This document shows, piece after piece, positions 33,735 through 63,766 of a DNA stretch of 64,000 nucleotides (its first letter is position 1; every line of letters starts with the position of its first letter). Source of the stretch: Basidiobolus meristosporus CBS 931.73 (Eukaryota > Fungi > Basidiobolomycota); contig MCFE01000177.1 in assembly GCA_002104905.1 (NCBI GenBank), positions 78,353 through 142,352 on the forward strand, in the 5' to 3' direction. Position numbers and translations under genes: made by a program. The notes beneath the pieces were generated by a model that was not told the origin of the DNA, did not search any database, and saw only the letters and a list, made by a program, of their open reading frames with translations.

Positions 33735-36004
33735 TTAGATCCCTCTTTCCACGAATGACTGCAGGATACCTTCGACAGTGGCTGGGTACTCTCTGAGCTC
33801 GACCGAGTCGCCGACTAGCACCGTGTTGGCCTGGACGAACAGCTTACGGGGCTGCTTGTGAGAGATGACGATGTCACGGAGGGACTTCCACTCGTCGGGG
33901 ACCCGGGTCATCTCAGCATACAACGCGGAGCCGGCCTCGAAGTCGGCCGTAGCCTTGTAGATCTGGAGCTTCTGGAGGAATGCGTGCATCGCCGGCATTC
34001 CCACCGAGTGAATCTTGCTGCGATCCAGGGTGATCACGGCGTCGGTATTGTCTGCGTTGCGCTCGATCTTCACGAAGTCCTCCCCAGCCTCGAGGAGCAC
34101 GCGCATGATGGCGTATCGGGCCATCATGTGGGCTTGGCCCCATTTCTTCGCGGTAGGATCGTAGAACTCCAAGCCGAGTAGACCGGCACGGGCCATGGAC
34201 AACCATCCGATGTACATGATGTCGTCGGCAAGTCCGACGTCGTGGCTAGAGTCGGTGTGGCCGAACACCTCAAGCGCCTCCTTGTCGGTGGAAAGGAAGA
34301 GGGCGACCGATTCGGCACGGCACTCCTCGTATGACGAGGAGATGTTTTTGAACACGGATCCCCATGTTTGGCCTGGCTTGTACCAACTGGTGATGGGCTT
34401 CTTGGTGACCGGGGACACAGGAGGATTGCTCTGATCGAAGTTGAATTTCCCAGGCTCCTGCTCGGCGAGCAACTTGCCGGAGCCGTGGCCGAGCAACTCG
34501 TGGAGACCCACTTGAACCTCGAACGCGGGGCCCTTAAGTTTCTCGAAGAGGGCACGGTCTTGTTCGTTCAAGAATGGGTACTTCTCGCTAGGGGCCTTGG
34601 CGTTCAGGATGTTACCAAGACTAACATTCTTGAAGCCATAGGTCTGTCGGATGTCGTCATAGTTGGGGATGTTGATGCCTAAATCACCCCGGAGACTATT
34701 AATATCTCCAAACATGCGAGGCGGATTAGTGGCCACTTACCGGCAGGAATGCCCCCGGTGGCAAAGGACATCACCTCCAAGGATGTGAAATCAGGCTTGT
34801 TGAACTTGTCCTTCTCGAACTCGACTCCCCTGGGAACAGAAACGGTACTCAGTCAGCGGAGAGGGGTTGGGGAGAGATGGACGGCAGACACTTACCAAGG
34901 CAACTTCGAGATGAATTTCTCGGCGTTGTCGACGAGGACACCGAATTTCTTGGTGCGATCCTTATTCACCATAGCAACGAAGCCTTCCCACTCGGCACGG
35001 ATACCAGCGGGGTCGCGATAGGTCTCGATGAAGCCAATGTTAGACTCCACGGTAGGCCCGATGTCCTTGATCCAGAACTTCTGGGACTCCTTGTGTGCCT
35101 CAATGGAGCCAGTGGTGAAGCTCTCTGCGTACTTCTCCAACATCTGGCGCTGGTTGTCGTTGGCAGCATACTTGATAGCGGCCTGGATTTCGTCGGCGAC
35201 CTTACGCATGGTCTCGTGGTAATCACCGTAGGTGATCTTCACGGACTTGCCCTCGGGAGTCTTGTGGACTTGGGGCTCCTTTTGCTGCGCGGAGGCGATC
35301 CTCACCTCAAACTCTGAGTCGGAAATCTTGAACAATCTACAAAGCCGCGGTTAGCACGGTATTCAGAATGCCCTCCTCCATCCCCAACCAAAGGCCTACC
35401 TGGTGTTGAGAGAGTCCACATCGATGGACTCAAGGTATCTCTGCACCTCCAGAATGTCCTTCTTCGCCACATTCTCCGAGTAGTAGTTCGACACGTGTCC
35501 GTCGTCCACGTATCCAAGTAAGTTCTTCGACTCGGGGGTGACGGAGTAGATGTTCTGTCGGACGGCCTCGAACAGCTCAGTCACCTTCTGGTTGGCCTTG
35601 GCTTTCACAATGGCCTCCAGGTCAGCTTCGGAGACGCGAGGGATAAATTTGGTGTCGCCAAAGGATTTGTAGTTGGCCAGGTTGGAGAGGAATTGGCCCG
35701 CGTACTGAAGCCAGTGCTGGAAGGCCTCCTCACCGACTCCACTGGCAGCACGCAACTTCTCCAAATCCACCAGCTTTCCAGTGCTCTCTTCCTTGAACAA
35801 GGACACGATGAAGTCGAAGATCGTCTCGCTCTCCTTGGTTGTCTGGTTAAGCAACGCACGAGCGCCGTACCAACTGGCTCTGCTGATGTGGTGGGCATAG
35901 TGCTTCTCTTGTTCGTTCAAAAGCTCAAAGTGAGGGCGAATCTCCAGCTGGCAGACTGGGGCGTTTAGGTCAGCGTAGTATTGAGATTCCTTACTTGTGG
36001 TCAT
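33735..36004 (-). CDS. DPP3: Dipeptidyl peptidase III (M49 zinc metallopeptidase); exons 36004-35400, 35336-34896, 34829-34741, 34678-33735 (692 aa)
   Basis: HELLGH and EECRAE zinc motifs, GFIETYRDP, GINIPNYDDIRQ..GFKNVSLGN. Three GT-AG introns join to a 2079-nt frame. Confidence 0.97.
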
Positions 36005-39000
36005 GTTGGGTGGAGACAAAGGGAGGTTGTAAGTGGCTCAGTTGCGAAGACACTCGCTTATATCCAGGCCCATGACGAAATCTCTTACGAATGATGAAAC
36101 CTAACTGTGCTACACTAATCAATGTTGGAAGACGAGGTTCTATTGGCCAAAAATGGCAAGCCTCGATTGTTCGCATCGCTTCGTAGGTTGGATTGAATGC
36201 TGAGGAGCCCGCAACCCAACCCTGGGGTTGGTGAAGATGGCTCCATTGATTCCAAATTCCCATGCATCCTTCGCATCCTACCAACATGGTAATACCATTG
36301 GCCAAAAATAGCGTTTTTTCGCGCTTGGTTTAGCTCCAATCATCGAGATCAGCTTCAGCAAAGGCCCGTTCTGGGATTAGCTTACGGAATTGTCTAATCA
36401 TTTCTCCCATGTTTTGATCGCAATACCTGTCAATTCGAGGGGCATTTGTGAGGACTATCCCCTGATTCCTGGCGACAGACATAGTCATCTGGAAAGTGCA
36501 ATTATCGTCGGTTTCACCTCATTTGATCTAGTTTATGCGTGCTACCGTGATGCTGAACCTAACAATACCAAACTTGACTTGATTCGCACTTTGACATTTG
36601 ATATTGACGCTGTAACAATTGCACCACCTTTGTCTCGCTAAATGAAGTCCAGTGGGTTGCTGATGATGGTGCACACTCGGTTGAATTGATTATCCTTGCG
36701 CCCAAGCAGCCTACTGATGTAAAGGGTATTATTCAGATGACCTTCTCCAGAAGAAGCAGAGGAAGCGTGAAAATGGGTGTCTTCATAATCATTGCTGTGA
36801 TACTACGCTGACTACGAAGCTCCTAGCCAAGAATGTGATTCTCATCGATCATCGGATGGCTCCACGCTAGCTGCCATAGGGTTGGATGCTGGTCGGGTTA
36901 GCAGTTCAACGCGCCCAGCTACATGGCACCTACTTGGGTCTAGTTGGTTGCTTATGACTGGGCAGGTGATCAACTACGCTTTCACTGGTATTTTGACTGG
37001 GAAGATTTCGACAACTGTATCCAAAGATGGAGTTTTTGGGATTCTTCGGGAAACCGTTTCAATGCTTATTCTTATTTCCGAAAAGTTATGCGGAGTATGG
37101 AATGTCACCAATTCTCCACCATTCTTTAGAGTAGCACAGGTGGAGACTGTTCAGTGCTGTGGAATATGGCATAAGAAGTAACGGCTGCGTGACACGGCGG
37201 CTAAATGATTTTCCGCTGAAGATAGGTCAAAGCGAAAAAGGTGTTCTTTGGTTGCTGAAATCAATTACATAATTAACAATATTAGTAATAGACTCTAGGT
37301 ATGTTATTAATGCTCTGTGCTTATATCTGGCCAATTAGCAAAAATCACCCGGATTTTAATCACGCTATATATTTTCTTACGTAATGGATTATCTGCAATA
37401 TACAATTGGTAATATCTCAAATATGCTCCAGGGTTTTCAAATATTGGATAGTTTCTTCACATTGCATGCCCTCTATATGTGCTACAGTTAGTTGATTCAA
37501 CTTCAGGATTCCTCATTTCATCCAAACTTCTACTTGGCCAAGTCATGGATATTACCAACTATAATACAAGAACTTATCCATAAAATGCTTACTTGTGCAG
37601 ATTATTTAATTATGTAGGTGTAATCCCAGAGAGGATATACTTCTACTACAACATGATAGGCATTTGAGGCTGCAACAGATGCTTGCATGGCATTGAGTTG
37701 TGGAAATCTAGTGATTGTACTTCTATACTATTATCACTTATGTTGGTTAGTTTGTAGCTCATGCACATACCATTTGCAGCTTATATTCATTGTTGGAAAT
37801 AGCTTAGATTAGCAGCAATGATGCTCAATAGGTGATGCATATCAGATATTTAGAAATTATCCAACAATTATTGCAAATTTCTCAAATATACTTGAATGCT
37901 CACCAAACACCATCATTAAGACTTTGTCTTACTAATCTTAGATACTTCATATGACATCTTTTGTTGGAATTAATTTTAGATATATCAGTAGTATAGTTAG
38001 CACCTTGATGTGGGCACTCTCAAAGTGGCCCATGAAGCCCTAAGCTATGTATATATATTCTTGTGGCCTTCTGGGTATATTCCGCATGCTTGTATTGCCA
38101 AGAGCAGTTATACCACATTTATTTTGAGTATATCATCAAATGAAAACCTCAGAGTGTACTTGTTCTCCATATCACACTTAATTCCTCCAAAATTTTGCCC
38201 CTAGCTATGAGCATTGAGCTGTGACTTCCTACATTGCCTATTACTGCTTCAACTGGTATACTTCCAACTACTCAAAAGCTGGCTATATATTCCTATGAGA
38301 AATTATTGTGATGGTCCCTTCAAGGGGACATCTCAAAGCTCAATTCCCATGACTCAGAGTTATTGATGGTGCAGGTCATTGTGCAAGAGCTGCTGAAACA
38401 AGAATTGCACCTCAGATTTCACTAAAAACATGGTATAAAATTTTCATCACAACAATTCCTAAGTTGCAATTAATTGGTTCTCTTTCATTTCTCTCACATA
38501 CTAATCCTGGACACTGATTCACCTACAATTGTGTACATTGAATGACTATTGCCTCTGTCTCACACTACTACTTTCCACATCAGCTGGTACTATTACTTTT
38601 CATGCAAAGAAATTAGTAAAATTCTGTGAATCTTCCATTTTAACTAAATTGTAAATTGTGCTGACCTTTTAAGTCCCTATACCCAACACTACTTTTAAGC
38701 CCAATCTCACACTCAATTATTGGCTCCATTGAAAGTTTCTGTTCAACATGTGTTTCTGCTGCAACATTGTTGCCCATGGCTTTGGCATGAACTCTGTATA
38801 TGTAAGCCATTATTTGTTCACTGGTTCCCATATATGATATGCTTTAGCTGGCACTGCAAGATCTATCACTTCATATGCTGGTTAGTGTAATAAATGCTTG
38901 CAATACTCAAGTGTGTTTTCTTTTGCACTGCTGTTGAAGAAGCACTGCAACCAATAGGTGATCCTATTGATGCTCCACAATTCCACTGTAGGAACTGTAA

Positions 39001-39974: not shown

Positions 39975-42900
39975 TGTTGTAAAAATTTGTATTTCCACCT
40001 AAATATTCACCTAACTTAGTCACTTAGATCATCACCTTCCAATCCTAGAGAATACTGACCAAATTCCTTGTCGGGATTTACTTAGAATATTTTCACCAAA
40101 ATACCAGGTACCCAGAACATGAAAATTCTCAAAGTTGTCCAAACAGCCCCAAACTTTGCACACATGTTCTTGGGACCTTCCTTAGCCTATTCTACGTGTT
40201 TGTTATGCCAAGACCAGGTAAAAGTATAAACACTACTTTTACATTCAATAAATCATTAAGTGAAAACCACATAATCTACTTGTCCTCCCAATCACTTCCA
40301 ATATCTCCAAGACTCTTACAACAGATTATGAGCCCCAAGCTGTCACTCTCTGCAATGTCTACTACTGCTATTACTGGAATTTTTCCCTCTGCTGAAAAGT
40401 TGGATGGCTCTAACTACCAAGTGTGGAAGGTGAAGATGAAGATGCTGCTACAAGAAAGAGGCCTTTGGGATATTGTCATGGGAGAAGAATGCCCTCCTAA
40501 AAACGTGGGAGAGGAAGCCTTAAAGTACCAGAAGAAAGAACAAAGTGCCTTTAACTGCATTTGCCTTAATGTCAAGGACAAATTGCTAATTCAATGCTCA
40601 AGAGCAAAAACGGCAAAGAATGCCTGGAAGGCATTAGAAGACACCTACCAGTCATGTTCAGCTGCCAAGAAAATGTATCTGAGAAGAAAATTCTTTACTA
40701 CAAAGATGCTGCCAGGAGAAGAAATGAAAAATCTAATTAACAGAATTACCCTGCTGGTAGATGAGATGGACTCTGTGGGCGTACCAACTACTGATGAGGA
40801 TGTGATAGTTACCATCCTGAATAGCCTGACAGACAAGTTTCAGGGCCTTGTATCAGCCCTAGAGTCCAGAACTGAAGATTTGACCTTAAATTACGTATAT
40901 GGAAGGCTCCTGGATGAAGAATTAAGAAAATCAAGCGCCAATAAGAAGGAAGAAGAAAATGCTTTAATAAGCAATGATAACCAACAAAGGAGGTACCCAA
41001 GACCCTACAAAGGCAACAACAACCTATTTTGCAACTACTGCAAAAGGAAAGGACACACATCGGACCGGTGTTTCAAAAAGAGAGATTATCAGCAAAAGAA
41101 GCCTGAATATGGAAATGCTGCAACAACTGAAGATAGACTATTCATATCTGCACTAAATATGACCACAAACAAGGATTCTCAGATGTGGTATATTGACTCT
41201 GGAGCTTCTCAACACTTTACACACCAAAAAGAACTTTTTACCCAATATCAAGAAATTCCAATTAAGAAGGTTTTCATGGGTGACAATGGAACACTTGATG
41301 CAGTTGGAGAAGGAACTATCTAAGTAAACCTTAGAAGCAGTGAAGGAAGCCATACACTGACCTTTAAAGAAGTACTCTATGTACCAGAAATAGCCAAGAA
41401 CCTACTCTCTGTAAGCAAGGCCACAGCAGAAGGACTCAGTTTCAGTTTTGACAATTCTGGATGCAGGATCACTGATCAAAATGGTGCCCATATTGCTTTG
41501 GGCATCAGAGATCAGAATCTATACAAGTTGACTTATATTCCATCATATCTGGAAGCCAATATAAGTAACTTAAATGAAGAAACACCAATGCTTTGGCACA
41601 GGAGATTTGGACACATCAATTTTGATTATTTGTGTAAAATGATCAAAGATCAGCTAATTTCTGGAGTGAAAATTGATCCCCCAGCTAATTTGGAGCACTG
41701 TGAAGCCTGCATATATGGGAAACAAGCCAGACAACCGTTCAAGAGCTCTGGGTTAATCAAAACTAAGAAAAAATTAGATCTAATTCACTCAGATCTGTGT
41801 GGACCTATGCAAAATTTATCCTTAGGCGGGATGAAGTATTTAATCACTTTTATTGATGATTATACAATATACACATGGGTCTACTTCATGGAGAGAAAGG
41901 AAGAAGCTCTGTCTAAGTTCAGGGAGTTTAAAGCCATGGTGGAGAGAGAAACTGGTGAAAAAATCAAGAAAATACGCTCTGACAATGGTGGAGAATATAC
42001 CTCAAAACTCTTCATCCACTTCTGCAAAATTCATGGGATAAAGCAAGAGACTACTGTACCATACTCCCCACAGCAAAATGGAGTAGCAGAACGAGCTAAC
42101 AGATCAATAATTGATATGGCAAGATCTATGATCCATGATCAAAAATTATCCTATGATTTTTGGGTGGAATCAGTTGCCACTGCTGTATACCTTAAAAATA
42201 GGAGTTATAACAGAATACTTTGTGATTCTACTCCATTTGAAGCATGGTATGGATACAGACCAAGTGCAGAACATCTAAGAATATTTGGGTGTACAGCATA
42301 TGCCAAAAAACTGGCCAGAAATCAGTCAAAATTTGAGCCAAAAAGTGTAAAATGCATATTTTTGGGCTACTGCAATGAGAGTAAGGCATACAGACTCTAC
42401 AATACCAAAGCAAAGAAGCTGATCAAGTCCAGGGATGTGTTGTTTGATGAAAATTTAAAATTTTCACAAAAAATGACATCAGATGATGACAAAAATTTGA
42501 TCTCAAGTCCACCAATTGTCAGGATTGAATCAGAGCAAAACAATGAAAATTTTTTCACTCCAGAGGACTCTACAACCGTGGTTCAGCCAGAATCAGTGCC
42601 CAGGAATATTCCAGAAGTGATCATTCCAGTATCAAATGCCCGGAGACCAAATTGGACAAGAAATAGCCCAAATTACTATATCAATGAGGGTACAAACTTA
42701 GCCTATGCCTATTCAGTCCATATTGATGAGCCCCAGACTGTAAAAGAGGCCCTAAATAGCCCTCAGACAAAGTTTTGGAGATCTGCAATGACTGAGGAAT
42801 ATCAGGCCCTGATGGAAAATTAAACTTGGGACTTAGTCAAATTACCAATCAACCGAAAATCAATTGGATGCAGATGGGTCTTCAAGACAAAATACAAGGC

Positions 42901-44659
42901 TGATGGTACAATTGAAAGATACAAAGCAAGACTTGTGGCCAAAGGATACTCTCAAACAAAAGGACTTGACTATACTGAGACCTTTGCACCGGTAGCCAAG
43001 TTTAATTCCATCAGATTAATATTGGCTATTGCAGCCAAATATAAGTTTTTTATTCATCAAATGGATGTAAAAACTGCATTTTTGAATGGAGAACTTGAAG
43101 AGGATGTGTATATGAACCAGCCTGATGGGTTTGTTGACCAAGATAACCCCCATTTGGTCTGCAAGCTTAAAAAGTCACTATATGGTCTCAAACAATCACC
43201 GAGAGCCTGGAATTGCAAGATAGATTCTTATTTGGAATCTTTGAGTTTCAAAAGGAGTAATGCTGACTATAGTATATACTATAAGCCAGATAGAGCAAAT
43301 CCAGTTCTATTAGCTCTATATGTGGATGATCTTATTATAGCCGCCAATAACCTAGAAACATTGGAAGAGACTAAATCCAGCCTATCTAAGGAGTTCAAGA
43401 TGTCCGATCTAGGAGAACTTAGTTACTACTTAGGGATTAAGTTCTCCATAGACAGAAGTACCCAGACTATTACCCTAAGCCAATTCAAGTATATTCAAGA
43501 TATACTAAAGAAGTACAAAATGGAAGACTGTAAGCCGGCAGCTACCCCAATGGAGACAAACCTTAACTTGGTCAAAACTCAACCAAATCAAGAGAGCTTG
43601 GTGCCATCTGAAAGCCCTGACTTTCCTTATCAATCTATGGTCGGCAGTCTGATGTATATCATGCTTGGAACACGTCCAGATATCTCATATTCAGTGGGAG
43701 TTGTCAGCCAACATAATCAGAATTATGGATCTGATCATATTGCAGCAGTTAAGCGGATTTTTAGATACCTACAAGGAACTGCTGATATCTGCTTAAGATA
43801 CACTTATAATGATTCAGAACAGGATCTTGTGGGATACTCTGATGCTGATTGGGGACGAAATTTGGAAGACAGAAGATCCACCACAGGATACACCTTTCTT
43901 TACTGTAAAGGAGCAATTTCATGGAATTCAAGAAAGCAACCAACCGTAGCACTTTCTACTACAGAGGCAGAGTATATGGCAGCCTGTGAAGCTACAAAAG
44001 AAGCAATGTGGTTAAGAAAACTCTTTACAGATTTAGGCCTATGTCAAAAAACGCCTATTACTTTATTTCAAGATAATCAAGGATGTATACAATTAGGTAG
44101 AAATCCAACTTTTCATGCTAGAACCAAGCACATAGATATTAGACATCATTTCATACGTGAAGCTATAGAGAGTACCTTAGTTAGCTTAGTTTACTGTCCT
44201 ACAGATGAAATGATTGCAGACATATTTACCAAACCATTAGCTAGAGACAAGTTTGAATATCTTAGGTCAAAATTAGGACTAGTCAGTATGAGCATTTAGC
44301 TGAGTGGGAGTGTTGTAAAAATTTGTATTTCCACCTAAATATTCACCTAACTTAGTCACTTAGATCATCACCTTCAAATCCTAGAGAATACTGACCAAAT
44401 TCCTTGTCGGGATTTACTTAGAATATTTTCACCAAAATACCAGGTACCCAGAACATGAAAATTCTCAAAGTTGTCCAAACAGCCCCAAACTTTGCACACA
44501 TGTTCTTGGGACCTTCCTTAACCTATTCTACGTGTTTGTAATGCCAAGACCAGGTAAAAGTATAAATACCACTTTTACATTCAATAAATCATTAAGTGAA
44601 AACCACATAATCTACTTGTTCTCCCAATCACTTCCAATATCTCCAAGACTCATACAACA
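39975..44659 (+). mobile_element. Near-intact copia family B element; 349-bp LTRs (39975-40323, 44311-44659), no matching TSD
   Basis: LTRs differ at 7 of 349 positions by manual comparison. PBS GATTATGAGCCC at 40324, PPT GAGTGGGAG at 44302-44310, flanks CTATG versus GAAAA. Confidence 0.97.
40355..44299 (+). pseudogene. Copia gag-pol single frame with two nonsense codons (TAA at 41321 and 42821)
   Basis: Track ORFs 40196, 41498 and 42935 share one frame. CCHC knuckle, WYIDSGAS protease, integrase (HSDLCGP, SDNGGEY, QNGVAER), RT YVDD, RNase H. The sister copy has GAA and CAA at the two stop positions. Confidence 0.95.
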
Positions 44660-45921: not shown

Positions 45922-46698
45922 TTACTCGGCCATTGTCGAATTATCAGTAGTATCTTTGGTGGGGACCAGCTTAAAATATGGGCAATTCTGGATGATATGA
46001 TCCGTTCTCCGGCATCCCAAGCAGCGGCGTGGTTGTCTGAAAGGGGGTTTCCAGGCTGTGTTCTCGTTTGGTAAAGTCTTCCGAAGTATCTCTGCCACCT
46101 CCACTTCCATTTTATTCACCCTCTTGGTCAGGGCCTCAATTTCCAAGTACCGGGGTTTCGGGGTAGTGGTGGCTAAGCTGAAATGCCTTCCATTTCTTAT
46201 CATGTCATATTGCTCTTCCTCCTCGGCATAAGCAATAGCTTCATCCATAGTTGCGGGTTTACATCTGCGCACCTCTAATCTAATCCTTGGATTAAGTACA
46301 CCCAAAAAGATCTGGACCCTCTCTTGCTCATCATTATATTCTAGTTGAGAGAGTAGCCGCACTACTTGTGTGGCAACCTCCGATACTGCTTTCTCATCCT
46401 GTCGTAGAGAGCGAAGAGTTTGTCTCCAAGTATCGATTCGGGCGGCGGTAACATATCTCTCCTTGAATCGTTCTTTAAAGGTCGGCCAGTCCGTTAGCTC
46501 CGATTCGCGGGCTTCAAACCAGATAGCTGCCGAGTCTCTCATATAGGCTCCGGCAATCATTGGTAGCTCCTCAAATCTCCAATGGTTGACACGTTGACCG
46601 ATCTCGCATTGTTTCAGCCAGCCTATAGGGTCCTCTTCGACATTCCCAGAGAAATTTCGAACTGTAAACAGACATATTCCATTGGTCGTTGTAGTCAT
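45922..46698 (-). CDS. Ty3/gypsy-type Gag (capsid + CCHC zinc knuckle), no pol or LTR detected
   Basis: FSG..EDP..WL, A..WF...WxxFKERF..RY, L.Q and CLGCRRTDHIIQNC motifs. Uninterrupted 258-aa frame. Confidence 0.8.
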   Translation of the reverse strand: MTTTTNGICLFTVRNFSGNVEEDPIGWLKQCEIGQRVNHWRFEELPMIAGAYMRDSAAIWFEARESELTDWPTFKERFKERYVTAARIDTWRQTLRSLRQDEKAVSEVATQVVRLLSQLEYNDEQERVQIFLGVLNPRIRLEVRRCKPATMDEAIAYAEEEEQYDMIRNGRHFSLATTTPKPRYLEIEALTKRVNKMEVEVAEILRKTLPNENTAWKPPFRQPRRCLGCRRTDHIIQNCPYFKLVPTKDTTDNSTMAE

Positions 46699-48155: not shown

Positions 48156-49169
48156 TCACGCCCACTTCTCCATATCTAAAGTGATCTTTCCTATCACGGA
48201 GCCGGCCTCTATCTTCTTCAGGGCAGCAAGAAGCCCATCCAGCGAGAATTCAGTCGTTTCAGTAACCGTAGGCATCATGACTCCTGCATCCATCAAATCG
48301 GCCACCTGGTTCAAAATTGCCGATTGCGAGCTCATGTTGTGATTGAGAACGCTTTTGGTGAACATGTTTTCCCAGGAAAAGGACAGAGACCTGCTCATGT
48401 CAGTGAACGGTAGGGACTCTGAATCCTTCACGATACTCACTATCCGCCCAAATGGGTTGACGATGTTTTGGGCGATGGGTAGGTATTTTTGGGTAGAATG
48501 ACAGATGAACATATAATCCACCGTTAATCCAAGCGAGTCTAGTTGCGGTTTGAGATCATCTCGATGGTTGATAACGTGCGTGGCCCCCATCTTTCTACAC
48601 CATTCCCGGGTCTCAGGACGTGAGGCGGTGGTGATGATATTCTCCAGTTTCAAAACCTTGGATGCTATCTGTGTGGCAATTGAACCGACCCCGCCTGCTC
48701 CGTTGATAATCAAGAGAGATTTGGGGGTTCTGACTTCGGGATTAGTCGGGATAGGAATCAAAAGCTGCTCAACAAGTGCTTCCCAGGCGGTGATGGCTGT
48801 CAGCGGAAGCCCGGCGGCTTCAGTAAATGAAAGCGTTTTTGGCTTTCTACCAACAATCCTTTCATCAACCAATGTATACTCCGAGTTGGAGCCGGGGCGA
48901 AATATCGAACCAGCGTACATAACCTCATCGCCGACTTTGTACTGTTGCACTTTGTCTCCGACTGCTTCCACAATGCCAGCGCCATCCCAACCGAGTACCA
49001 AGGGGAATTGATGACTGAACCACCCAGAACGGGCCAGGTTGTCAACGGGGTTTACGGAGACTGCCCGGTTACGGACCAAGATGTCGGTACCGGTTGGGAC
49101 CGGCTTTGGAACATTTGCTTCTTCCAAGTCGGAGCCGGTTCCAGCGCTTATTTGTTGAATCACCTTCAT
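48156..49169 (-). CDS. Medium-chain dehydrogenase/reductase (zinc-binding ADH family, quinone-oxidoreductase-like, no Zn ligands); intronless
   Basis: AVSVNPVD, LGWDGAGIVEAVG, GSNSEYTLVDERIVGRKP, EAAGLPLTAITAWEAL, Rossmann GAGGVG, GKI near the C-terminus. Confidence 0.93.
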   Translation of the reverse strand: MKVIQQISAGTGSDLEEANVPKPVPTGTDILVRNRAVSVNPVDNLARSGWFSHQFPLVLGWDGAGIVEAVGDKVQQYKVGDEVMYAGSIFRPGSNSEYTLVDERIVGRKPKTLSFTEAAGLPLTAITAWEALVEQLLIPIPTNPEVRTPKSLLIINGAGGVGSIATQIASKVLKLENIITTASRPETREWCRKMGATHVINHRDDLKPQLDSLGLTVDYMFICHSTQKYLPIAQNIVNPFGRIVSIVKDSESLPFTDMSRSLSFSWENMFTKSVLNHNMSSQSAILNQVADLMDAGVMMPTVTETTEFSLDGLLAALKKIEAGSVIGKITLDMEKWA

Positions 49170-52030: not shown

Positions 52031-52912
52031 ATAGGTGGCTAAGAAATATTAAATAATTGGTAAAGCACTCTAAGCTGGGCAGGAGGTAGTTCCAAAACTA
52101 TGATAGGAGAGTATAATCAGAGAGGAGTATATTGCTACGCAAGGTAAATCAGGGCGGAGTGATGGCAATAGTAGTGGTTCCAATAAGCTGGCAATTCTTG
52201 AAAACAGACATTAATAAAAAAAAGACTTGAAATACAAGCTGTCAAGACCGTGGTAAAAATACATCCTAAAAGTCTCCATCGGGGATAAACTGCTTGTTTT
52301 GAGAACTTTAGAGAAGTTGAAAGTATTTGCGGGAGCTGGTAGATTGTTTGGATTTCACTTATCCCTATGTTGCAAGTGGTAATCATATCTCCACTTGCAC
52401 CAGGTCTTGGAAACACTAACAATGTTCAGAAGGTAAGAAACATTTTTCCCATGGTTGCGTAGTGGCCAAAGTAACCTTTTAGTTACAAAAGGTCTTTGAA
52501 GACGTAGTTGCTCCGATTTTAGGCCATAGATTACCATGTTGTAGAGCCTCCCAAACCACCGTTGCAATATCCTTGTCATGGAGGGGCTCTGTGCCTCTCC
52601 AAAGTACTTTCCATACGGTCTTCAATCTATAGAAATGTGATATGAAAGACCGGACAAAAAAAGGTTACGAACAAAAGCAGTATACCTGTGTTGGCACAGG
52701 TGTAATTCGATCAAGAAAAGATGAATCATGAGGTCATTCTTCTGATTTCCATACTACCACGGAGGGGACTATTTTATTGTGATTTATACGCCTGGACATC
52801 GTTCCCTTTTGCCACAACTCTATTCCTTTCCTCCAACCTTCCCACCTCTATACTTTGTCAATATTCTCACGTACTCCGCGCTTTGTCAGTAATAACATTT
52901 CTTCACAATACC

Positions 52913-55778
52913 ATGACTAATAATCGCCTGAAGCTGTTCTGTGTTGTTGATGGGGAGACTACAGCCAATATCTTTTCAGTCACCGTCTCTACTACCTCAA
53001 ACGTTTCAGAGCTCAAGCAACTCATTAGAGCAGCAAAGGCTCCTCGACTTGATAATGTCTCAGCCGATGAACTCATCCTCTGGCGTGTCTTGATTCCCGT
53101 TGGCCCGAGCGACAAACACAAACCGATATTCCTGAACGAGTTCGAGTCAGCAACAGAACTTCAACCAATTGATGAGATTTCTGAAGTCTTCGAGGATCAA
53201 CCACCCAAAAAAGCGATTCATATCATCATTCAACTAGGTAACGCAAACTCGCTTTGTTCTTGGTGACAATTAGTGATTGACCTTATCCATTCGTTTAATT
53301 GTGTTAACAGGACCCCACACTTTCTCTGGCTACATTTCGGCTGAATCTCGCCCTGGCGCACCGCTGAATGGTAAATGCCACTCCATTTTTGCTTAAATTA
53401 CGGTGCTCGTTCCCATTCCCAATATACGGACTCTTTTTGCGTATTCAGGAGACCTAAGTGTTGAAATCAAGAATATTACACGGAAGTTTTTTGCTCCCGG
53501 CTCAAAGACGTCTGAATTTCTCGAGCGATTTGTGCGAGGCCATGAACGGCTTCCGCTCACAACTGGCAGACTTTCTGGCTTACCAAGAGTGCGGCTACGA
53601 AAACAGCGAGAGCGAGATAATGCACACCCTAGTCTCCTCTTCATAAACCTACCCGACCCCTCCACCTCTCTTGACCCATCAAAGAAACTCGCTTCTGACA
53701 ACATTTTGGATCTCATCCAAAGGTGTGGAGGAAGCGTACCAATTTTTGGGGTCTCAGGATGTGGGAAAACCCGTGGCATGATGGAGCTTCTTTCGCGCCA
53801 CTGAGGATTCTATTTCAATGCATCTGGGGAGGATCTAGGCTCAGATGACATGACCACTTTTCTTGCACAAGTTGGATCCCGTCTGGGGACATCCCGTGAT
53901 ATGAACAACCGCGTCGCGAGAACAATGACCTATTTGCTATTCCTCTCGCGACTCTTGGTTCTTCAGTTCTGCCTGCAAGTCGACAACAATGCCTTGTCTT
54001 TCACATCTGCGAGATGGATGCTCCTGCAGGTCTGCCCTCATATGTTCATGGACGTCTTCGAGCACCTGTTCCAGAAATTGCTCCCGCTGCACCAGAGATC
54101 AATTGCCGAGGAACCAGCCCTGATTGATATCGTCCGCAAGACATTTCAGAACACCCGCAGTTGCCTTATGGAGCATAGAGGCGCCCCCCAATTCTCTGCC
54201 GATTGTACACTCTTTGTTGTTCACGATGAGGCGCAGATTTTGGGGGAGGAGCACTTTGGTCGTTTTGAGTCGCTGAATGGAACAAGGGATGACCGGCCGC
54301 TCTTGTCCCCGATTCTCTATGGCTTTCGAAATATTGAGGGCGAGAATGAGCTCACAGTCTTGACGTCTGGTACGGGACTCAGCATTTATACTCTCAACTG
54401 GGCACGAAGCTCTGGATCTACGCTGAAGCATTTGCCGGGCGCGTTTACCTACATGGAGTTTCCAGGATGGACTAGTCGACAGTCAATTGATACGTACATC
54501 ACCAGCATACGGAACCAACTACCGACAGAGGACGCAAGAGTGGTGTTGGACAGCCTCCTACCATCAGAGGCAAGGGATATGCTTTTTGAGAAGCTGGCTG
54601 GCAGGTTTCGCCCAATTGTCACCGCCATTGAGGCTATAATTGCAAATGGAACACCTGGTTTCTGGAAAGTAGCTATAGAGAAGACGGAGGCCAGACTAGT
54701 TTCGTGGGATCATCAAAGAGAGCCAGGGAATCTTATTCATGAGATTATCCGTTTAGAAAACAAATACCGCAGGAATCTGGATGTGTTCCAGCACCTTCGC
54801 ACGGTGGAGGAGGGGCTTGGCCTCCTGCTATTCCAGCGATACATGTTTGGGGCTCGTACTCTAGTTCTTGAGGATGCGGTTCCGGAGATGGTGGAACGCG
54901 CATTTGGTCGTATTATGATCATTGACGGAGCCGCAAGAACCGTTCTTGATGAGCCTTTTGCCATGAAAGCGGCTGAAAATTACGTCAGGGTTCGGGACAT
55001 TGGTTTCGTGAAGACAATGGAACAATGGATGCAACAGTCGAACAATGCTTCAGTCCACGGATTTGCATGGGAGTACATGATGATGAGCGTCTTTGTAGAA
55101 ACCTTCAAAACACATCCCTTCTCCGACTGGTCGCACCAACCATCGATACCATCGATGTGTGCCTCGCTCGAGGGGAAGTCGGAGATTGTTGGTCTGATTG
55201 ATGATTGCTTTCAGCGAGGGGTTACACACCAGGAGATCACTATGCAGCAGTTCATGGAAGCCCACGTTAACAACAACTCAACACGAGGAGGCAAATCTGT
55301 TCCCCCGTTCTATTTTCCGAAAGCAAAACCCTCAGGTCCGGATATGGTATTCTACATTCGAGTCAACGGTAACCTCTTTCCAGTATTCGTACAGCTGAAG
55401 CTTCGTCCTGTGTTTTCACACCAGACTACGCATGCTGCTCTCAAGACGGTCTCGGAGGAATGTGTTCAAGAGCACGTAGAGAACCTTGGCGACTACTGCC
55501 CTACTAACAATACGTACATCAGTATGATCATTGCCTACCCGGGTAAAATGATTGTTTCGCAGATTGGCCGGCCAAATCCCGCTTTACCTAGTAGAAGTTT
55601 GAATCAGGTTGTTGTCAATATCACAGGAGATAACTTTGCCAAGATTTTCCCGCCAAGTCATGTTGATTTTCTTGACCGCATCAAAACACCTGTCAAGCGA
55701 CACGCAATGGACCAGGAATGGGATGAGGGAGATCAATTGAAAAAATCGCGAACATACACCTGTAACCTATCTCAATAG
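52913..55778 (+). pseudogene. CRN: Crinkler (CRN/CR) effector-like gene: ubiquitin-like CRN N-terminus + P-loop NTPase + REase-like C-terminus; exons 52913-53237, 53311-53370, 53449-55778; one TGA at 53802
   Basis: LKLFCVVDGE...F.V...VSELK.LI...L.LWRV...IHIIIQ, Walker A GVSGCGKT, VVHDEAQ, C-terminal GPDMVF...FVQLK. GT-AG introns keep the frame. SRH*GFYFNA implies TGG>TGA. Confidence 0.88.
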
Positions 55779-57003: not shown

Positions 57004-57019
57004 TAGGGTAGGGTGTAGG
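57003..57019 (+). repeat. Degenerate telomere-like tract TTAGGG TAGGG TGTAGG at the copia breakpoint
   Basis: Read directly from sequence. First T is shared with the copia gag. Confidence 0.6.
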
Positions 57020-57639
57020 TGTTATAGTAAGGGCTAGGAAAAGGTTAGAAGAGCAGGGGGTCTGGGGGACGCAGTCCCCTAGAGAATAAAAAAGCAGGGG
57101 GTTTGGGGGATGCAATCCCCCATACTGCTCCTATACTCCTTAAATTCCCGTTGGATTACTTTTCTCTCATTCTTGGTTCTGGTCCCTTAGGGTTAAAATT
57201 CCTCCTCCTAACCCTTATCACCCTAACCATAAATATTTTTACCCTACAATTGGCACATTGTCTGCTCATATAGTGGGCATGTCTGGGCCAATATTTGTCT
57301 CCCTATACTGTCCATATGCTCTGTATAAGTCTTGATGGCTATTTAATTAATAAATTGTTACTTTTAATGTATATCTAATAATTAATGGGATTCATCCCAA
57401 TCTGGCCACAATCCCATATTTTGATAAGCTTTGGGCACCATAAATTGCGCGGCCCTAATATGATAAAAAATTCATGGCCAAGACAAATTTTCTATAACCC
57501 AATTGCTTTTACCAAATATAAAGTGTATCCCAAAGTTCAATATATATTATGGCTATAATAGAAACTTTATTTGACACCATCGCAACTACTACTTATGTTC
57601 TATGCGCACATGTATCCCGCGGGAATTGTAAAACTTAGC

Positions 57640-58420
57640 CACGTGGTACAAAAGTGCTTTTATTTTTCATCATGATAGTTTTACATGAGTTCTTAACGCA
57701 CTTTGAAAGTACGCAGTAGCCATACCCCAACAGGTTTTAAGGATGTCCACTAGCTACATCTACTTGTGTCTAGCAGGAGCCATCAATCATCAGCCACGCA
57801 ATACTGAAATGCTTTTATTTTTCATCATGCTAGTTTTGTATGAATCCCTAACGCACTTTCATAGTGCGTGGTAACCATACCCCAACAGGTTTTAAGGATA
57901 CCCACTTGCTACGTTTACTTGTGTCTAGCGGGAGTCATCAATCATCAGACGTGTGGTAATAAAGTGCTTTTATTTTTCATCATGATAGTTTTACATGAGT
58001 TCCTAACGCACTTTGAAAGTACGCAGTAGCCATACCCCAACAGGTTTTAAGGATGTCCACTTGCTACGTTTACTTGTGTCTAGCGGGAGTCATCAATCAT
58101 CAGACGCGTGGTAATAAAGTGCTTTTATTTTTCATCATGATAGTTTTACATGAGTCCCTAACGCACTTTTATAGTGCGCGGTAACCATACCCCAACAGGT
58201 TTTAAGGATACCCACTTGCTACGTTTACTTGTGTCTAGCGGGAGTTATCAATCATCAGCCGCGTGGTAATAAAGTGCTTTTATTTTTCATCATGATAGTT
58301 TTACATGAGTCCCTAACGCACTTTTATAGTGCGCGGTAACCATACCCCAACAGGTTTTAAGGATACCCACTTGCCACATTTACTTGTGTATTGTACGGAC
58401 TATCAACAAACAGCCACGTG
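57640..58420. repeat. Subtelomeric tandem repeat, five copies of a 155-bp unit
   Basis: GCTTTTATTTTTCATCATG recurs at 57656, 57811, 57966, 58121 and 58276, an exact 155-bp period. Confidence 0.97.
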
Positions 58421-58788
58421 GGAATGGAACATCATTGAAAAGCATTGCTTTGTTGTTAGCAAGTATTGATGCGCAAATAGTGGTACTATGTGAATTATTG
58501 AGTAACTATTTACTCTAGTTGGTTCCAAGATATTCCTAGACAATATGCTCAAAATCAATATTAGCATCAATAGCTTGCTCTTTGATCACTAAACCACCGC
58601 ACCCAATATGCGGTGGCCTTGGTTTTGTCTAGCCGTCAAGGAATGAAACCAGAGTACAGTCACAAGAGAGGCAAAAGTGAAATGTGATGAAGTAAGTGTA
58701 TATGAAAGTAATATAAATCTACAGGACAGAAGAGAACAACTAGTAGTTAAGCAGCACTCACTGACACTCCACTGAGTAGAGCACCAAC

Positions 58789-59268
58789 ATGGACAATAAA
58801 CAAGTCATGAGGGGAAAGCTTAAGGACCGCTACTTGGGGATCAAGACCAAAAGAGGAAGCTGCCTCTACCATAGCAGTCCTCACGCTCCAAAGGAAGACC
58901 AAGAGTCTATTATAGACAAAGATTGCGGCAAGAAGAGCAGTACAATTACCAGTTCTGGTAGTGGTACCTTTGGAAGTCCTGAATACCTGGAGAAAACTCA
59001 GAAAAATTGGCAGATGACTCAGTTGTCCTGAGGAGAAAACAAACCAATGCAATTGAGCAGTTCCAAAACAAACTTCAGCTTAGTTCTTCTTTGCCTCACT
59101 ATAAAGTACTCCAAGTGGCTTATTTGGATTATAAGCGTAATGAAGGAGAATCAGGCAGAGACTGATAAATTAAGTGATAGTCAATTGCATCACTTCTTAG
59201 ATCAGGTAGAGAAACAGTCGCACAGCCAAGAGACGGAACAAGAATTGACAATTACAGAAACCAAATAA
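58789..59268 (+). pseudogene. Unidentified charged, low-complexity reading frame with an internal TGA (59029)
   Basis: Track ORFs 58789 and 59047 share a frame and are followed by an AATAAA-rich tract. No family recognised. Confidence 0.3.
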
Positions 59269-59500
59269 TTTTGCCAATGTAGTTTTGCATTTTAATAAAA
59301 TAAAAGGGTGTTAATAAGAACAGAATAAAGTTAACTTATTTGTACATCAAATGATTCAAATACTGGCTAGATGGATGTTACGTAGGAGCAAGAAGCTCAG
59401 TAACCTCAAAGGAAAGATATGATGAATGGGCCACCCACATCATCCAAATGAGTATAAAAGTGGAGAAAGTAGACATAATCCTTCATAAAAAACAGGAAGC

Positions 59501-60286
59501 ATGGAAGCAGGCAGTAGCCGGGTAGATGCCAGGAGTGAAGGTAGAGTACAAAGAGAGCAAGGAAGGGGACAAGGACGTGGAAGAGGACACGGAACCAGGC
59601 GCGGAAGAGGAAGAGGGCAAGGAAGTGGCCAAATCCAAGAGGAGCGTCAAGGAGGTGTTGCAGCAAACGTGGATGATGCTGAGCAAGTTGCTGTAGTCAC
59701 TACCAGGCGGCCGGTCAACCAAGTTTCCCAAGCATTGTCAGAGGGTTGACAAGAGCTTCCGGAATATAGGACAACATTGCACCATGAGATATTGCGACAT
59801 ATGTGCCAGGAGATTAAACAGAGGAGGGGTGATATTGTAAAGCTAAATTGGGATATTGCTGGACTTCAAGCCCAGATTGGTTTCCGTTTCCACCATTCTA
59901 CTGAGGCATTAGTGGCACAAATGGTGGAAAAGTTTGCCCGCATCAGGGCAAGCAATGAGCAGGGTGCATCTTCCGGCCCAGGTGTACTTGCGAGCAACAG
60001 TATTGGAGGGGATACTACTTCCTCCCTCAAACCTACCACAAGCCAAGAGACAAGAGCAGAATCCTCCACAACAATGAGAATGGCCCCCACGCAGGTTGAT
60101 ATGGAAGTGTGCGAAGAAGATGTGGAGAAGCAGAGTGGGGATACTATAGGCCAACCAGAAACTGTAATGGAGGCGGAGAGACCAAGTCATATTGTCATCT
60201 TAAAAATACCACAGTTTGATTCATCGCTATCACTTCCCCCATCATCACTATCTGTGCCCCCATCACCACCGCCATCCTCTGGCTAA
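59501..60286 (+). pseudogene. RG/GR-repeat-rich protein with a predicted helical segment and Ser/Pro tail; internal TGA (59747)
   Basis: EQGRGQGRGRGHGTRRGRGRGQG. Track ORFs 59501 and 59777 share a frame. Confidence 0.4.
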
Positions 60287-60411
60287 CTTGAGTAAATAAA
60301 GAATTTCCACCATCCCAAATCAATGAATTGACAAGTAATAAGTTGAGCTGATAAGATTGACGATTTACAGACTAATATATGTAAAGTATGTAGTACTTAA
60401 GAGCTTTCAAG

Positions 60412-63069
60412 TTGTGGTGTATTATCAAGTATTCACCGTCACATAAATCACGCAGCAGTTGTTGTATCCCTATCCCAATGGCATTAGAAGCCAGCAGTTA
60501 CAAGGAGCATTGGAAAAATTTTGGCATTTACCTGGTGACGGTGGCAGGTGTAACAAAACGCAGCTATTGCTCAATGACCATTACCCCGTCTATGAGATAC
60601 TTGCTATTATATGGAGGGTATTCTGTTGAGCACTTTCAAGACAGCAAAATATCCCCGCCTTATGATGAGCGTATAGCTGAAGAAACATTCGGCCGTGGAA
60701 TACTCTATGAGCCCAGCTCAAAGGTTCAAATGATTCACCTTGCAGATCTACACGGTGATGAAGACATCACAGTGACAGTTCTCCCGACTCCAGACAACAT
60801 ATCAACTACAGAGGCAGCCAAAGGGGTGATTTTAATTGGCAACACCTGTGCTAGTGACCACGAGAATCTCTACATATATGGTGGTTTTGAGCTGAGCCAT
60901 AGAGAATACTCAGGGCAACATGAAAGTGCCAAAAAACAGGGGAAAAAAGCAATACAAAGCAAGAGTGGGGAGACAATCAATAGAAGACTGAGCAAGCTGG
61001 AGGTAATCACGTACAAAGATGGCAATGGATACTCCAGAGTATTGGAGACAAGGCCATTCTTGAATAATCTGGCAAATATGCCTTCAGCAAGAGGTTGGGC
61101 AGTTCTTACGTACGCATTTGATTGCTTATTCTTGCTGGGCGGCTATCCTACACCATTGGAACCACCTTATACCCAACCAAATGGGAGTTTTTTAAACAAG
61201 TTCTACTGTTTAAAATTGCAAACTGGTGATTGGGAAAGATGATATGTACACTGGGCAATACAGGAGCTTGGAGAAAACTTTATTGCTGTGGTAAACAAGT
61301 ATGGCAACCAAATCCAATACATCAACAATGCAAATGTTACATTCACCTACAATGTCATTAATCAGATCTGGATTTACCCTCCCAATCCAAGTCAGGAAGA
61401 AGTGAGTACAAAGCAGCTACTAGGGCGCATTCTTAATGAATTGGCAGCAATCTCTCAGCGGCACAAGAGGGAAGGCGAAGGAAGTGCTGAGACTGAAAAT
61501 ATCTTGCGGCATAGTGCCCATGGTCTTACTGTCCCACTTAAGAACCATCAAGCATTTGGCATACAATGGCTGATGTGTACAGAGGCCATCCATAAAGGAG
61601 CATTGCTTGCCGATTCCATGGGACTTGGAAAGACATTGCAGATATTAAGTCTCATATTGGAGACACCTGAGCAAAGGCCAAATCTTATTGTTGTCACGCT
61701 TGGAATACTTCTCAATTGGGTGATGGAGATAAAGACAAAAGCAAGGATATCCAATGAAGAGCTTCATGTATTTCATGGAAAATTCCGAGCTATCAAGAAG
61801 TCAGATATGGAGACTAAGAGGATCATGCTCACCACCTACCACACACTATGTGTTGAAGCAAGGAACCCTGATTTGCCTATATAGAATGTGAAATTTGGCC
61901 AAATAGGGGCCAATGAGGCAGATACACTTAAGAACTACAAAGGCGGTAGCTTAAACGCAGTGAGTAAAATTGATGGAGAATCCTTGATACTTGTCACTGC
62001 CACCCCATTCCAAAATGAGATTATGGATCTTTATTCATATTTCACATTATTCAATCTATGGGAAGGCATTCCAAAGGATTTCCATTGACTCCTACTTGTG
62101 GAGGCCAATGCAAACAGGCTAGTAGAATGGGTTGTAGAAAGATTTGGCCCATTAATATTGAGACGCGTTCCAGAGTTGCAAATATTTGGAGAACGCGCAG
62201 TATCCATGCCTAGTATTCAAGAGCAGATTGTCTTGTGCCAATTCTTGCCGTAGGAGCTGCAGGAGTACAAACAACTGCAGTCAAGTCTTCCAGAGGAAGT
62301 CGGTCAGATGGGTGCAAATACCTATCTGCGTCTGTACTCATGCCATCCATATATGTATACCTGGAGCAGGAAGAGGAATCAACTGAAAAAAGCGGCTGAC
62401 GCTAGCATTGTCCAAGATGTTGAGATGAGTGAGGATGATTTTCTACCTGAGATTGATGAGGATCTTGAGGTGGTCGCGGTTGAGGTTGAGGAGCAGCTTC
62501 AAGAGATTAATAGCAAAGATGTTGACAGCTCATCCAATGTTCCATCTACTTCTGCACCAACTGCCATACGCACCAAAGACACCCCTACAATTGCCCAAAG
62601 AGGGCTTGCGTTAGAGGACTCCAACAGGGTATTCATCCAAGATTTCCTCACTGGTGTAACCAACAACACTGTGAACAAGCATAGTGGCAAAACTCGGAAA
62701 ATCATGGAAATCCTGCTTGAAATCCAAGAAAATAAGGAGCACGCACGTGTTGTTATTTTTTCTGGGTTTAATCTGATGCTTGACATAGTGGCTTACCATT
62801 TGAGGGAGCAGAGCATTGAACATCTGAAGATTACCGGTTCCACCCCAGTTTGGATACAAAAGAGCAGTATAGATACATTTGCATTGCCAGTCCCGGAGGG
62901 CGAGATTTGTGTGCTACTGATCAATATCAAATGTGGCGCATTTGGATTAAATTTGCAGATGGCATCAGCGGTAATCATTGCCAACAATTGGTAGAATCCC
63001 TATGTAGAAATCCAAGCAAAGGCCAGAGTTTGGAGGATGAATCAACCAAATAATGTTTCTAGTTACCAG
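60412..63069 (+). pseudogene. Kelch-like repeats fused to a SNF2-family (SF2) ATPase/helicase; five in-frame stops; C-terminus truncated at telomeric repeats
   Basis: One frame. LLLYGG, LYIYGG and LFLLGG..FY.L.L.TG.W, then HQAFGIQWL, LADSMGLGKT, NLIVV...LLNW, NEAD (motif II), TATPFQN, VVIFSGF, GAFGLNLQ.A..VI, W*NP..E.QA.ARVWR. Stops at 61240, 61882, 62086, 62251, 62992. Confidence 0.88.
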
Positions 63070-63083
63070 TTAGGGTTAGGGGG
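63070..63083 (+). repeat. Interstitial telomeric repeats TTAGGG TTAGGG(GG) at the SNF2 breakpoint
   Basis: Two perfect units where helicase similarity ends (..QPNNVSSYQ|). Confidence 0.8.
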
Positions 63084-63169
63084 ATGATAATCACCACAGG
63101 GTGAAATCTTTATTTATATCATAAATAAAGAAGCCAAATTTGAATATGAATATTTGAGATGCAGTAAGC

Positions 63170-63766
63170 CTACAAGATAAACTTTGACTTTGCTGTATCC
63201 CAAATATCTTCAATACTAAAGTCTAGAGGAGAATGTAGCAAAACTGCCTGTTCACTGTAGTATTTCTTGAGGAAGTTTGTGACTTGAAGGGAAGGAGAGT
63301 TTTTCAGCAAGCTGGTAAACCTTTTGAGGAGTTCTTTTTCCAGAGAGAATGGAACAAAGAGTGGAATGTCTAAATGATGTCTGAATATATGCTCTGAGAG
63401 CTCCCAATCCAGCATATTTTTGACTTCCTCTGTAAAATCTTCAACAATATCTTTGTCAAGAATAACTTCCAAGAGATCCCTGGCAATGTACTGAAGGTTA
63501 ATAATCTTAGGCATATGAATACCCAGGTCCTTGAGGTAGGTTCTTTGTTCTGAAATTGGGAGATAGCCAGCATTTCTGAAATAGCAAACAGCCCAGTTGG
63601 CAGTGGGAGGAGTATCAGGGCTGACAGGGAATCTTCTTCTGGCTTTAGGGTGCACTGGCTTAGGTGACTGTCTTGTTGAAAGGGCAGCTGGCTTTGGATG
63701 AGCTTGAAGTGCTTGGGAGTATGTCTGAGTATGAATGGCAGGAGTTGCTGGTTGCTGACAGTTTTC
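63170..63766 (-). CDS. 5'-truncated ORF1/gag-like reading frame, open up to the first telomere repeat (no ATG)
   Basis: Manual translation extends the 161-aa track ORF to 63766 (ENCQQPATPAIHTQTYSQAL...). The upstream TAA comes from the CCCTAA repeat. Family assignment is tentative. Confidence 0.6.
   Translation of the reverse strand, partial: ENCQQPATPAIHTQTYSQALQAHPKPAALSTRQSPKPVHPKARRRFPVSPDTPPTANWAVCYFRNAGYLPISEQRTYLKDLGIHMPKIINLQYIARDLLEVILDKDIVEDFTEEVKNMLDWELSEHIFRHHLDIPLFVPFSLEKELLKRFTSLLKNSPSLQVTNFLKKYYSEQAVLLHSPLDFSIEDIWDTAKSKFIL

Follow-up and report, generated by a model that had tools for sequence, protein, structure and literature searches.

A Kelch-like/SNF2 gene family in a putative subtelomeric repeat unit at the chromosome ends of the fungus Basidiobolus meristosporus

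What kind of motor gene sits at the chromosome ends of the fungus Basidiobolus meristosporus CBS 931.73, and how did it come to be there? The question is raised by a 64,000-nucleotide stretch of genome assembly GCA_002104905.1 (contig MCFE01000177.1, positions 78,353 to 142,352 of the forward strand; this whole stretch is called the window hereafter). It ends in a telomere array and carries, shortly before it, an interrupted open reading frame (ORF) that joins a Kelch-like N-terminal part to a SNF2-type ATPase. An earlier note, made from the letters of the window, had proposed a new subtelomeric or mobile-element-borne helicase family. The telomere-linked helicases (TLHs) described in two reports (PMC1635262; bioRxiv 10.1101/2024.02.27.582403) are RecQ-type and lie near telomere repeats at many ends.

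This work assigns the Kelch-SNF2 frame to a multi-copy family at chromosome ends. Alignment of the copies indicates that window positions 57004 to 63072 are one copy of a subtelomeric repeat unit of roughly 6.3 kb with three ORFs. We give a probability of about 0.6 to the reading that this unit is a subtelomeric repeat comparable to the yeast Y' element, spread by recombination primed in a telomere-like tract. The parallel is drawn because the unit has a fixed telomere-like left edge and a constant polarity, can be arranged in series and is located at ends only.

Gene-model fragments of the family were found on at least 15 contigs of the assembly, the window's own contig included, a count based on the 90% clusters around P0153 and P0154 plus P0001, P0004 and P0006. 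The family proteins of the strain are P0001, P0004, P0153, P0154 and P0162 to P0172. Loci were fetched as L001 to L011; L005 is the contig of L004 again, leaving ten distinct loci. With the window and the two units of L011 (L011a and L011b), these provide 11 ORF copies, and a heavily deleted twelfth is present in L001. All 11 examined copies are located at the ends of contigs, with the gene directed at the telomere. TTAGGG arrays on the gene strand terminate L001, L002, L004, L006, L007 and L009; L003, L008, L010 and L011 stop at contig ends. The distal array is 0.7 to 9.3 kb away in six fetched loci and the window, and no second family copy was found within the 64 kb of the window. These results bear out the subtelomeric multi-copy family that the earlier note had expected. 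The family is confined to chromosome ends. The window copy is not a decayed housekeeping gene, the lone SNF2 remnant which that note had named as a possible refutation. In L001 (10262 to 10678), the whole Kelch part is deleted (window-equivalent 60062 to 61379), many 1-nt gaps are present and a 45-bp fragment of the left edge of a second unit follows; this copy is either very decayed or lies in a poorly polished part of the assembly.

The unit and the chromosome end beyond it comprise the following features, given in window coordinates:

57004 to 57056 (+): left edge, a degenerate telomere-like tract (TAGGG TAGGG TGTAGG ... TAAGGG CTAGG) joined to a broken copia element
57050 to 57125 (unstranded): two short G5/C5 palindromes, read directly and conserved in other copies
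57642 to 58389 (unstranded): 155-bp tandem repeat, 4.8 copies, also present in other units with varying copy number
58789 to 59268 (+): ORF-A, an orphan of 153 to 159 amino acids (aa) in other copies, with two 1-nt indels here (near 59001 and 59139)
59489 to 60286 (+): ORF-B, an orphan (about 261 aa) whose N-terminus is RGG-rich; its frame is open in L010, and a stop splits it in the window
60478 to 63072 (+): Kelch-SNF2 pseudogene, codons 1 to 865 of a 942- to 943-codon ORF, with five stops
60478 to 61400 (+): Kelch-like beta-propeller domain, GG motifs at 60601, 60868 and 61126
61537 to 62349 (+): SNF2 ATPase lobe 1, motif I at 61612, Ia at 61684, II (NEAD) at 61912, III at 61996 and LRLYSCHP at 62332
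62431 to 62650 (+): acidic, low-complexity insertion at the site of the RING finger in relatives, whose consensus there is a Cys-rich RING
62700 to 63072 (+): SNF2 lobe 2 (Helicase_C), motif IV at 62752, V at 62935 and VI at 63013, cut 9 codons past motif VI
63070 to 63081 (+): healing point, where the native sequence stops at ...CAGTTAG and telomere repeat then continues
63082 to 63766 (-): 5'-truncated ORF1-only telomeric retroelement, ORF at 63170 to 63655 (-); the same module occurs in L004, L007, L008 and L009
63767 to 64000 (+): terminal TTAGGG array of 38.8 copies, from repeat analysis

The left edge of the unit is fixed. An identical junction, TTAGGG followed by TGTAGGTGTTATAG..., is found in L001, L003, L004, L006, L007, L008, L009, L010 and L011, and the upstream DNA differs. 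Each junction carries the telomere-like edge, which is joined to at least six different upstream sequences: a copia element in the window, a 36-nt 3' stub of a long interspersed nuclear element (LINE) in L006, LINE bodies in L004 and L010, an ORF1-only element that the edge follows directly in L008 and L009, a Ty3-like element in L011, and other DNA in L003 and L007. Within the unit, no Pfam family was found for ORF-A or ORF-B, and the two 1-nt indels of ORF-A recur in other copies according to the comparison with sequencing reads.

The direction of the three ORFs is toward the telomere at all loci and opposite to that of the telomeric LINE and ORF1-only elements. Units lie between telomeric LINE copies or elements in L004, L006 and L010, and such sandwiching indicates that they joined ends already bearing retroelements. 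L011 carries two units in series, about 3.9 kb apart, with a spacer that includes a Ty3-like element. A Ty3-like gag-protease-reverse transcriptase ORF of 822 aa (L011 3414 to 6615) is severed exactly at the left edge of the second unit, which shows the addition of this unit to an end eroded into the retrotransposon.

The distal side of the unit varies from locus to locus. In window-equivalent coordinates, the cuts are located at 61660 (L010), 61764 (L001), 62313 (L004), 62530 (L009), 62596 (L006), 62652 (L008), 62685 (L002), 63073 (window) and about 63200 (L007). At the junctions that were read (window, L004, L006, L007 and L008), TTAGGGGG and the 3' end of a telomeric retroelement come right after the cut. 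The cut of L002 leads into unrelated DNA, and minus-strand telomeric elements are found farther distal in L001, L002, L010 and L011b.

The window copy is broken at 63073, with about 78 last codons gone; other copies read on. At this position, L007 and L011 have CAGTTAGTCATG...; their sequence here is ...TACCAGTTAGTCATGCAAG..., and the C-terminal helices expected of SNF2 come next. In the window, ...TACCAGTTAG is followed by GGTTAGGGGGATGATAATCACC..., a telomere seed plus the 3' end of the minus-strand ORF1-only retroelement. Because L007 and L011 read on there, the end at 63069, which the earlier note had taken as the limit of the frame, is a healed break at a native TTAG and no stop codon. 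Telomerase would have acted at this break and the retroelement would have been added to it, in an order that we infer. The ORF of the retroelement resembles one in L002 (9121 to 9843); the 5' end of the element is truncated by the telomere in the window, and the element is about 300 bp longer in L008 (2063 to 3069) and L009 (4398 to 5366).

The Kelch-SNF2 frame was analyzed by searching its stop-free pieces separately, with X at stops used for the repeat test only; the window ORF joined to the L011 tail served as coordinate scaffold for BLAST. Translation of window 60412 to 63069 (+) gives 886 codons with exactly five in-frame stops (TGA 61240, TAG 61882, TGA 62086, TAG 62251 and TAG 62992), in agreement with the frame of roughly 880 codons first described. 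The first in-frame ATG is located at 60478, where the gene models of other copies begin (MALEASSYKE...), and is likely the true start, rather than 60412. The natural stop is reached by both L011 units and closes a family frame of 943 codons, stop included (a 942-codon gene). P0162 is an uninterrupted 634-aa product that spans the Kelch part and SNF2 lobe 1. A single 1-nt gap is the sole interruption in 725 codons of L008, and L010 is clean across its 395 retained codons. Kelch-SNF2 is thus, as the reading frames of these copies indicate, one intronless ORF and not the two separate genes that had been considered as an objection. For the 255-aa product encoded by the window itself, no exact match was on record.

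The motor part belongs to the SNF2 proteins, which are DNA translocases rather than strand-separating helicases. Two window pieces matched Pfam SNF2-rel_dom (61243 to 61881, E-value 1.1e-16; 61888 to 62085, E-value 1.2e-5) and a third matched Helicase_C (62257 to 62991, E-value 9.4e-9), with gathering scores exceeded in both families (61.3 bits against a cut-off of 24.9 and 35.9 bits against 23.5, respectively); P0004 scores 94.4 bits. All motifs from I to VI that the earlier note had listed were located in the window copy: I (MGLGKT), II (NEAD), III (TATP) and VI (QAKARVWRMNQ), as well as Ia, IV and V. The GLGKT of motif I and both arginines of motif VI are kept. Motif II reads NEAD (AAT, Asn) in eight of ten copies, the window included, and DEAD (GAT, Asp) in L011a and L011b; on this distribution, NEAD is probably derived. 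With five stops, NEAD as motif II and about 78 codons lost, the window copy is dead.

The relatives of the motor were sought in a full library of 1.84 billion representatives. With piece 61243 to 61881 as query, identity drops from 91% (P0004, a paralogue) to 34% for a chytrid protein (E-value 9.3e-25), beneath which thousands of generic SNF2 proteins follow. Outside relatives share 34 to 48% identity over about 115 residues. The only products in the library with at least 50% identity to this piece are the fragments P0004 (417 aa), P0006 (106 aa) and P0001 (149 aa); the word searches cover proteins of 0.55 to 1.75 times the query length, a range outside which a 942-aa product lies. The top named matches are fungal, and the best of them is annotated as Ris1. 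Among the 44 full-length nearest SNF2 relatives, 26 have a RING finger and none has a Kelch domain. Alignment of P0162 residues 346 to 627 with a profile of these 44 relatives (hhalign) gave a probability of 99.95 and an E-value of 3.5e-38. Lobe 1 aligns end to end, including the LRLRQxCxHP-type motif that reads LRLYSCHP here. No Cys-rich segment and no RING Pfam match were found in the Kelch-SNF2 protein. To judge from these alignments, the closest proteins outside the family are fungal SNF2 proteins of the RING type (Ris1/Rad5/16-like), and the motor itself is divergent and RING-less. Pfam and PDB searches returned SNF2-type matches only and no RecQ domain. The PDB sequence matches of the ATPase are weak and generic (E-value about 1e-8), and no subfamily was therefore assigned from them. 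The matches from PADLOC and PHROGs were all of a generic SNF2 kind (ZorD, DpdE, phrog_62) and do not point to a viral or defence origin; scans of metagenome and viral contigs yielded no relatives of P0153.

The N-terminal part contains three hhhhGG motifs (LLLYGG, LYIYGG and LFLLGG), each followed by W or Y; the earlier note had seen at least three Kelch-like GG repeats. No Pfam Kelch model passes, and the propeller rests on fold similarity. Only four to five blades are recognizable by eye, and blades 2 and 3 are unusually long. All ten structural neighbour sets of the ESM Atlas model of P0162 (residues 1 to 320; predicted local distance difference test score (pLDDT) of 0.64 for the model) are Kelch propellers, with superposition at template modelling scores of 0.53 to 0.60 over 206 to 231 residues. 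A language-model feature search returned Kelch/RAG2 with a score of 0.93 on the window piece, and UniRef names P0154 and P0164 'Galactose oxidase'. Comparison of an N-terminal profile with PDB sequences found no Kelch chain, and self-comparison for internal repeats (hhalign) gave one off-diagonal match (E-value 0.19). Because fold neighbours and language-model features agree, a Kelch-like propeller is accepted with moderate confidence despite the sub-threshold Pfam scores. P0162 residues 1 to 320 would share their fold with the Kelch propellers of LZTR1, epithiospecifier protein and KLHL22 and, by language-model features, RAG2; unlike Kelch-SNF2, none of these has a motor domain.

The copies are 95.4 to 98.3% identical in a star-like pattern, and pairwise ratios of non-synonymous to synonymous substitution (dN/dS) range from 0.47 to 0.67. 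Four of the five window stops trace back to C>T or G>A changes, as had been claimed for all five: codons 255 and 537 derive from CGA, and codons 469 and 839 from TGG. The fifth (62251, codon 592) arose from GAG by a G>T transversion, judged likewise by copy comparison. Codons 255, 537 and 635 (61240, 62086 and 62380) read CGA, TGA or CAA depending on the copy. As TGA and CAA are the two outcomes of CpG deamination in CGA, on either strand, the shared stops follow no tree; read across the copies, these codons are a clean case of recurrent CpG deamination mimicking common descent. The observed/expected CpG ratio is 0.37 in the ORF, compared with 0.75 to 0.90 for four of the window's host genes; a copia element gave 0.17. 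The private changes of the window copy (C>T 11, G>A 21, T>C 12, A>G 18) are enriched at CpG and not at CpA. Repeat-induced point mutation was rejected, since transitions run both ways and the enrichment is at CpG rather than CpA; the stops fit CpG deamination plus ordinary mutation.

Sequencing reads were compared over 4,661 letters of the window outside the TTAGGG array. In contigs from two runs of the same strain (X1 and X2), position 62086 is C (codon CGA) and position 61883 is G (codon TGG), both giving sense codons. In runs of a second sample from 2013 (X5 and X6), contigs about 82 to 85% identical to window 61073 to 62884 were found, with C at 62086; between these matches, the sequence has diverged too far for alignment. 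Given this homologue, the family may predate the roughly 3% burst seen in the assembly.

How would such a unit reach so many ends? In the preferred reading of a Y'-like repeat, an eroded end with a short TTAGGG seed would invade the telomere-like tract at the left edge of a unit on another chromosome and copy outward by break-induced replication. The copies would later erode from the tip and heal at chance TTAG matches, and the healed copies would be silenced and decay by deamination of methylated CpG. An intact protein would, from its predicted domains, act as a DNA-dependent translocase that the propeller aims at a partner. Several observations weigh against this reading. Break-induced copying should transmit the donor's cut and cap, yet the cuts all differ, so that each end must have eroded independently later. 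None of the 11 examined copies is intact, each having zero to six stops or 1-nt indels plus truncation, and the intact copies that the earlier note had imagined at other ends were thus not found among them; the function of the protein consequently has to be read from its domains. L011b, the sole copy of full length, is interrupted by a stop at codon 537 and by seven indels, and some of the 1-nt indels may be PacBio assembly errors. All Pfam Kelch models score under their gathering thresholds (the best, PF24681, 22.5 bits against 50, E-value 7.6e-5; Kelch_3, 17.6 against 22), and AlphaFold on P0153 with eight near-identical rows gave an unusable model (pLDDT 28.9).

The precise left edge at a telomere repeat, seen in at least nine junctions, and the insertion of units between telomeric retroelements would also suit a deleted derivative of an autonomous DNA element, such as a 10- to 11-kb tyrosine-recombinase element that inserts site-specifically into telomere repeats and carries Kelch-SNF2 as its own gene. 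We consider this main rival unlikely: no recombinase or transposase ORF, tyrosine recombinases included, was found in or beside the 11 fetched copies, no terminal inverted repeats or target duplications of the unit were seen, the right end is variable instead of fixed and every ORF is decayed. Nothing here shows the autonomous mobile element that 'mobile-element-borne' had implied. Ordinary segmental duplication of whole chromosome ends in a large and possibly polyploid genome would require no end-specific spreading, and it would account for the low, uniform divergence between copies and for the homology of the copia fragments that immediately precede the end structures in the window and L004. 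It does not predict that the proximal DNA differs in at least six loci and changes exactly at the telomere-like tract, which makes it quite improbable. It is hardly credible that the unit is itself a retroelement targeted to telomeres and, like the adjacent LINE and ORF1-only elements, was added through target-primed reverse transcription. Two features agree with this idea, namely its placement within one-way stacks of these elements and the start of its left edge at a telomere repeat, but its three ORFs point toward the telomere, opposite to all telomeric retroelements of these loci (minus-strand ORFs), and it contains neither reverse transcriptase nor gag; the ORF orientation contradicts such an origin, which was rejected. 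The Y'-like repeat remains our preferred reading.

Half of the window consists of transposons and half of host genes. Among the host genes are a chitin-binding deacetylase (28844 to 30166), an M49 peptidase (33735 to 36019) and a zinc alcohol dehydrogenase (48156 to 49169). The transposons at 45922 to 46698 (-), 125 to 1810 (+) and 40196 to 44299 (+) include a stand-alone Gag/Ty3-capsid ORF and several copia-type elements (CpG ratio 0.17). A 181-aa ORF at 52721 to 53266 (+) has a Crinkler effector N-terminal domain (Pfam E-value 2.3e-23), and just downstream of it lies a 642-aa ORF without Pfam family (53850 to 55778, +); the pair may be a modular gene of the Crinkler type, here in a fungus of zygomycete grade.

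Among end-linked genes, the closest parallel in arrangement is the Y' element of Saccharomyces cerevisiae, a multi-kb block present at many ends, by or between telomere tracts, which can occur in series and of which many copies are degenerate. Its helicase ORF, Y'-Help1, is a long motor-protein ORF that reads toward the telomere. The Kelch-SNF2 unit is likewise multi-copy at ends, is edged by a telomere tract, occurs in series in L011 and carries a motor ORF directed toward the telomere. It differs from Y' in its SNF2-type motor with N-terminal Kelch-like propeller, in its two further orphan ORFs and 155-bp tandem repeat, and in its coexistence with telomere-specific retroelements. With the RecQ-type TLHs of Magnaporthe, Ustilago, S. 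pombe (tlh) and Fusarium, it shares membership of the helicase superfamily and a position within a few kb of telomere repeats; in contrast to them, it has no RecQ domain, its motor consists of SNF2-rel_dom plus Helicase_C and its relatives are RING-type SNF2 proteins. Rad5, Rad16, Ris1 (Uls1) and Lodestar share lobe 1, including the CxHP-type motif. Kelch-SNF2 differs from this group by an acidic insertion in place of the RING, by a Kelch domain that is absent from the 44 relatives and by NEAD as motif II in 8/10 copies. The earlier note knew of no Kelch-SNF2 architecture, and this statement held, given the absence of Kelch from those relatives and, in the library searched, of any paper that joins both domains. 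Seven papers contain both Basidiobolus and a telomere term, with titles and abstracts that mention neither; at the level of titles and abstracts, there was no sign of a description of Basidiobolus chromosome ends. On these comparisons, motor type and domain combination appear to be new among end-linked genes, and no working copy was found.

Chromosome ends have acquired helicase-type genes on several occasions, as with the Y' helicase of budding yeast and the RecQ-type TLHs of other fungi, and to our knowledge nobody knows the reason for this repetition. By itself, the window copy adds modestly to this question: it is dead and clipped, and its main value is that of a dated layer, one that helps to record how ends broke, healed and were added to. 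It is rather doubtful that intact copies elsewhere encode a working propeller-guided SNF2 translocase at chromosome ends, acting for example in recombinational end repair or telomeric chromatin remodelling. If true, Kelch-SNF2 would be a third, independently recruited class of telomere-linked motor beside the RecQ-type TLHs and the Y' helicase, and its host would be using telomerase and telomeric retrotransposons as well. Such a third case would sharpen the question of recruitment, as it involves a different motor family (SNF2) combined with a substrate-recognition propeller. Its host is an early-diverging fungus whose ends bear telomere-specific retrotransposons together with ordinary TTAGGG repeats, and B. 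meristosporus would thereby offer a culturable system in which three routes of end maintenance can be compared.

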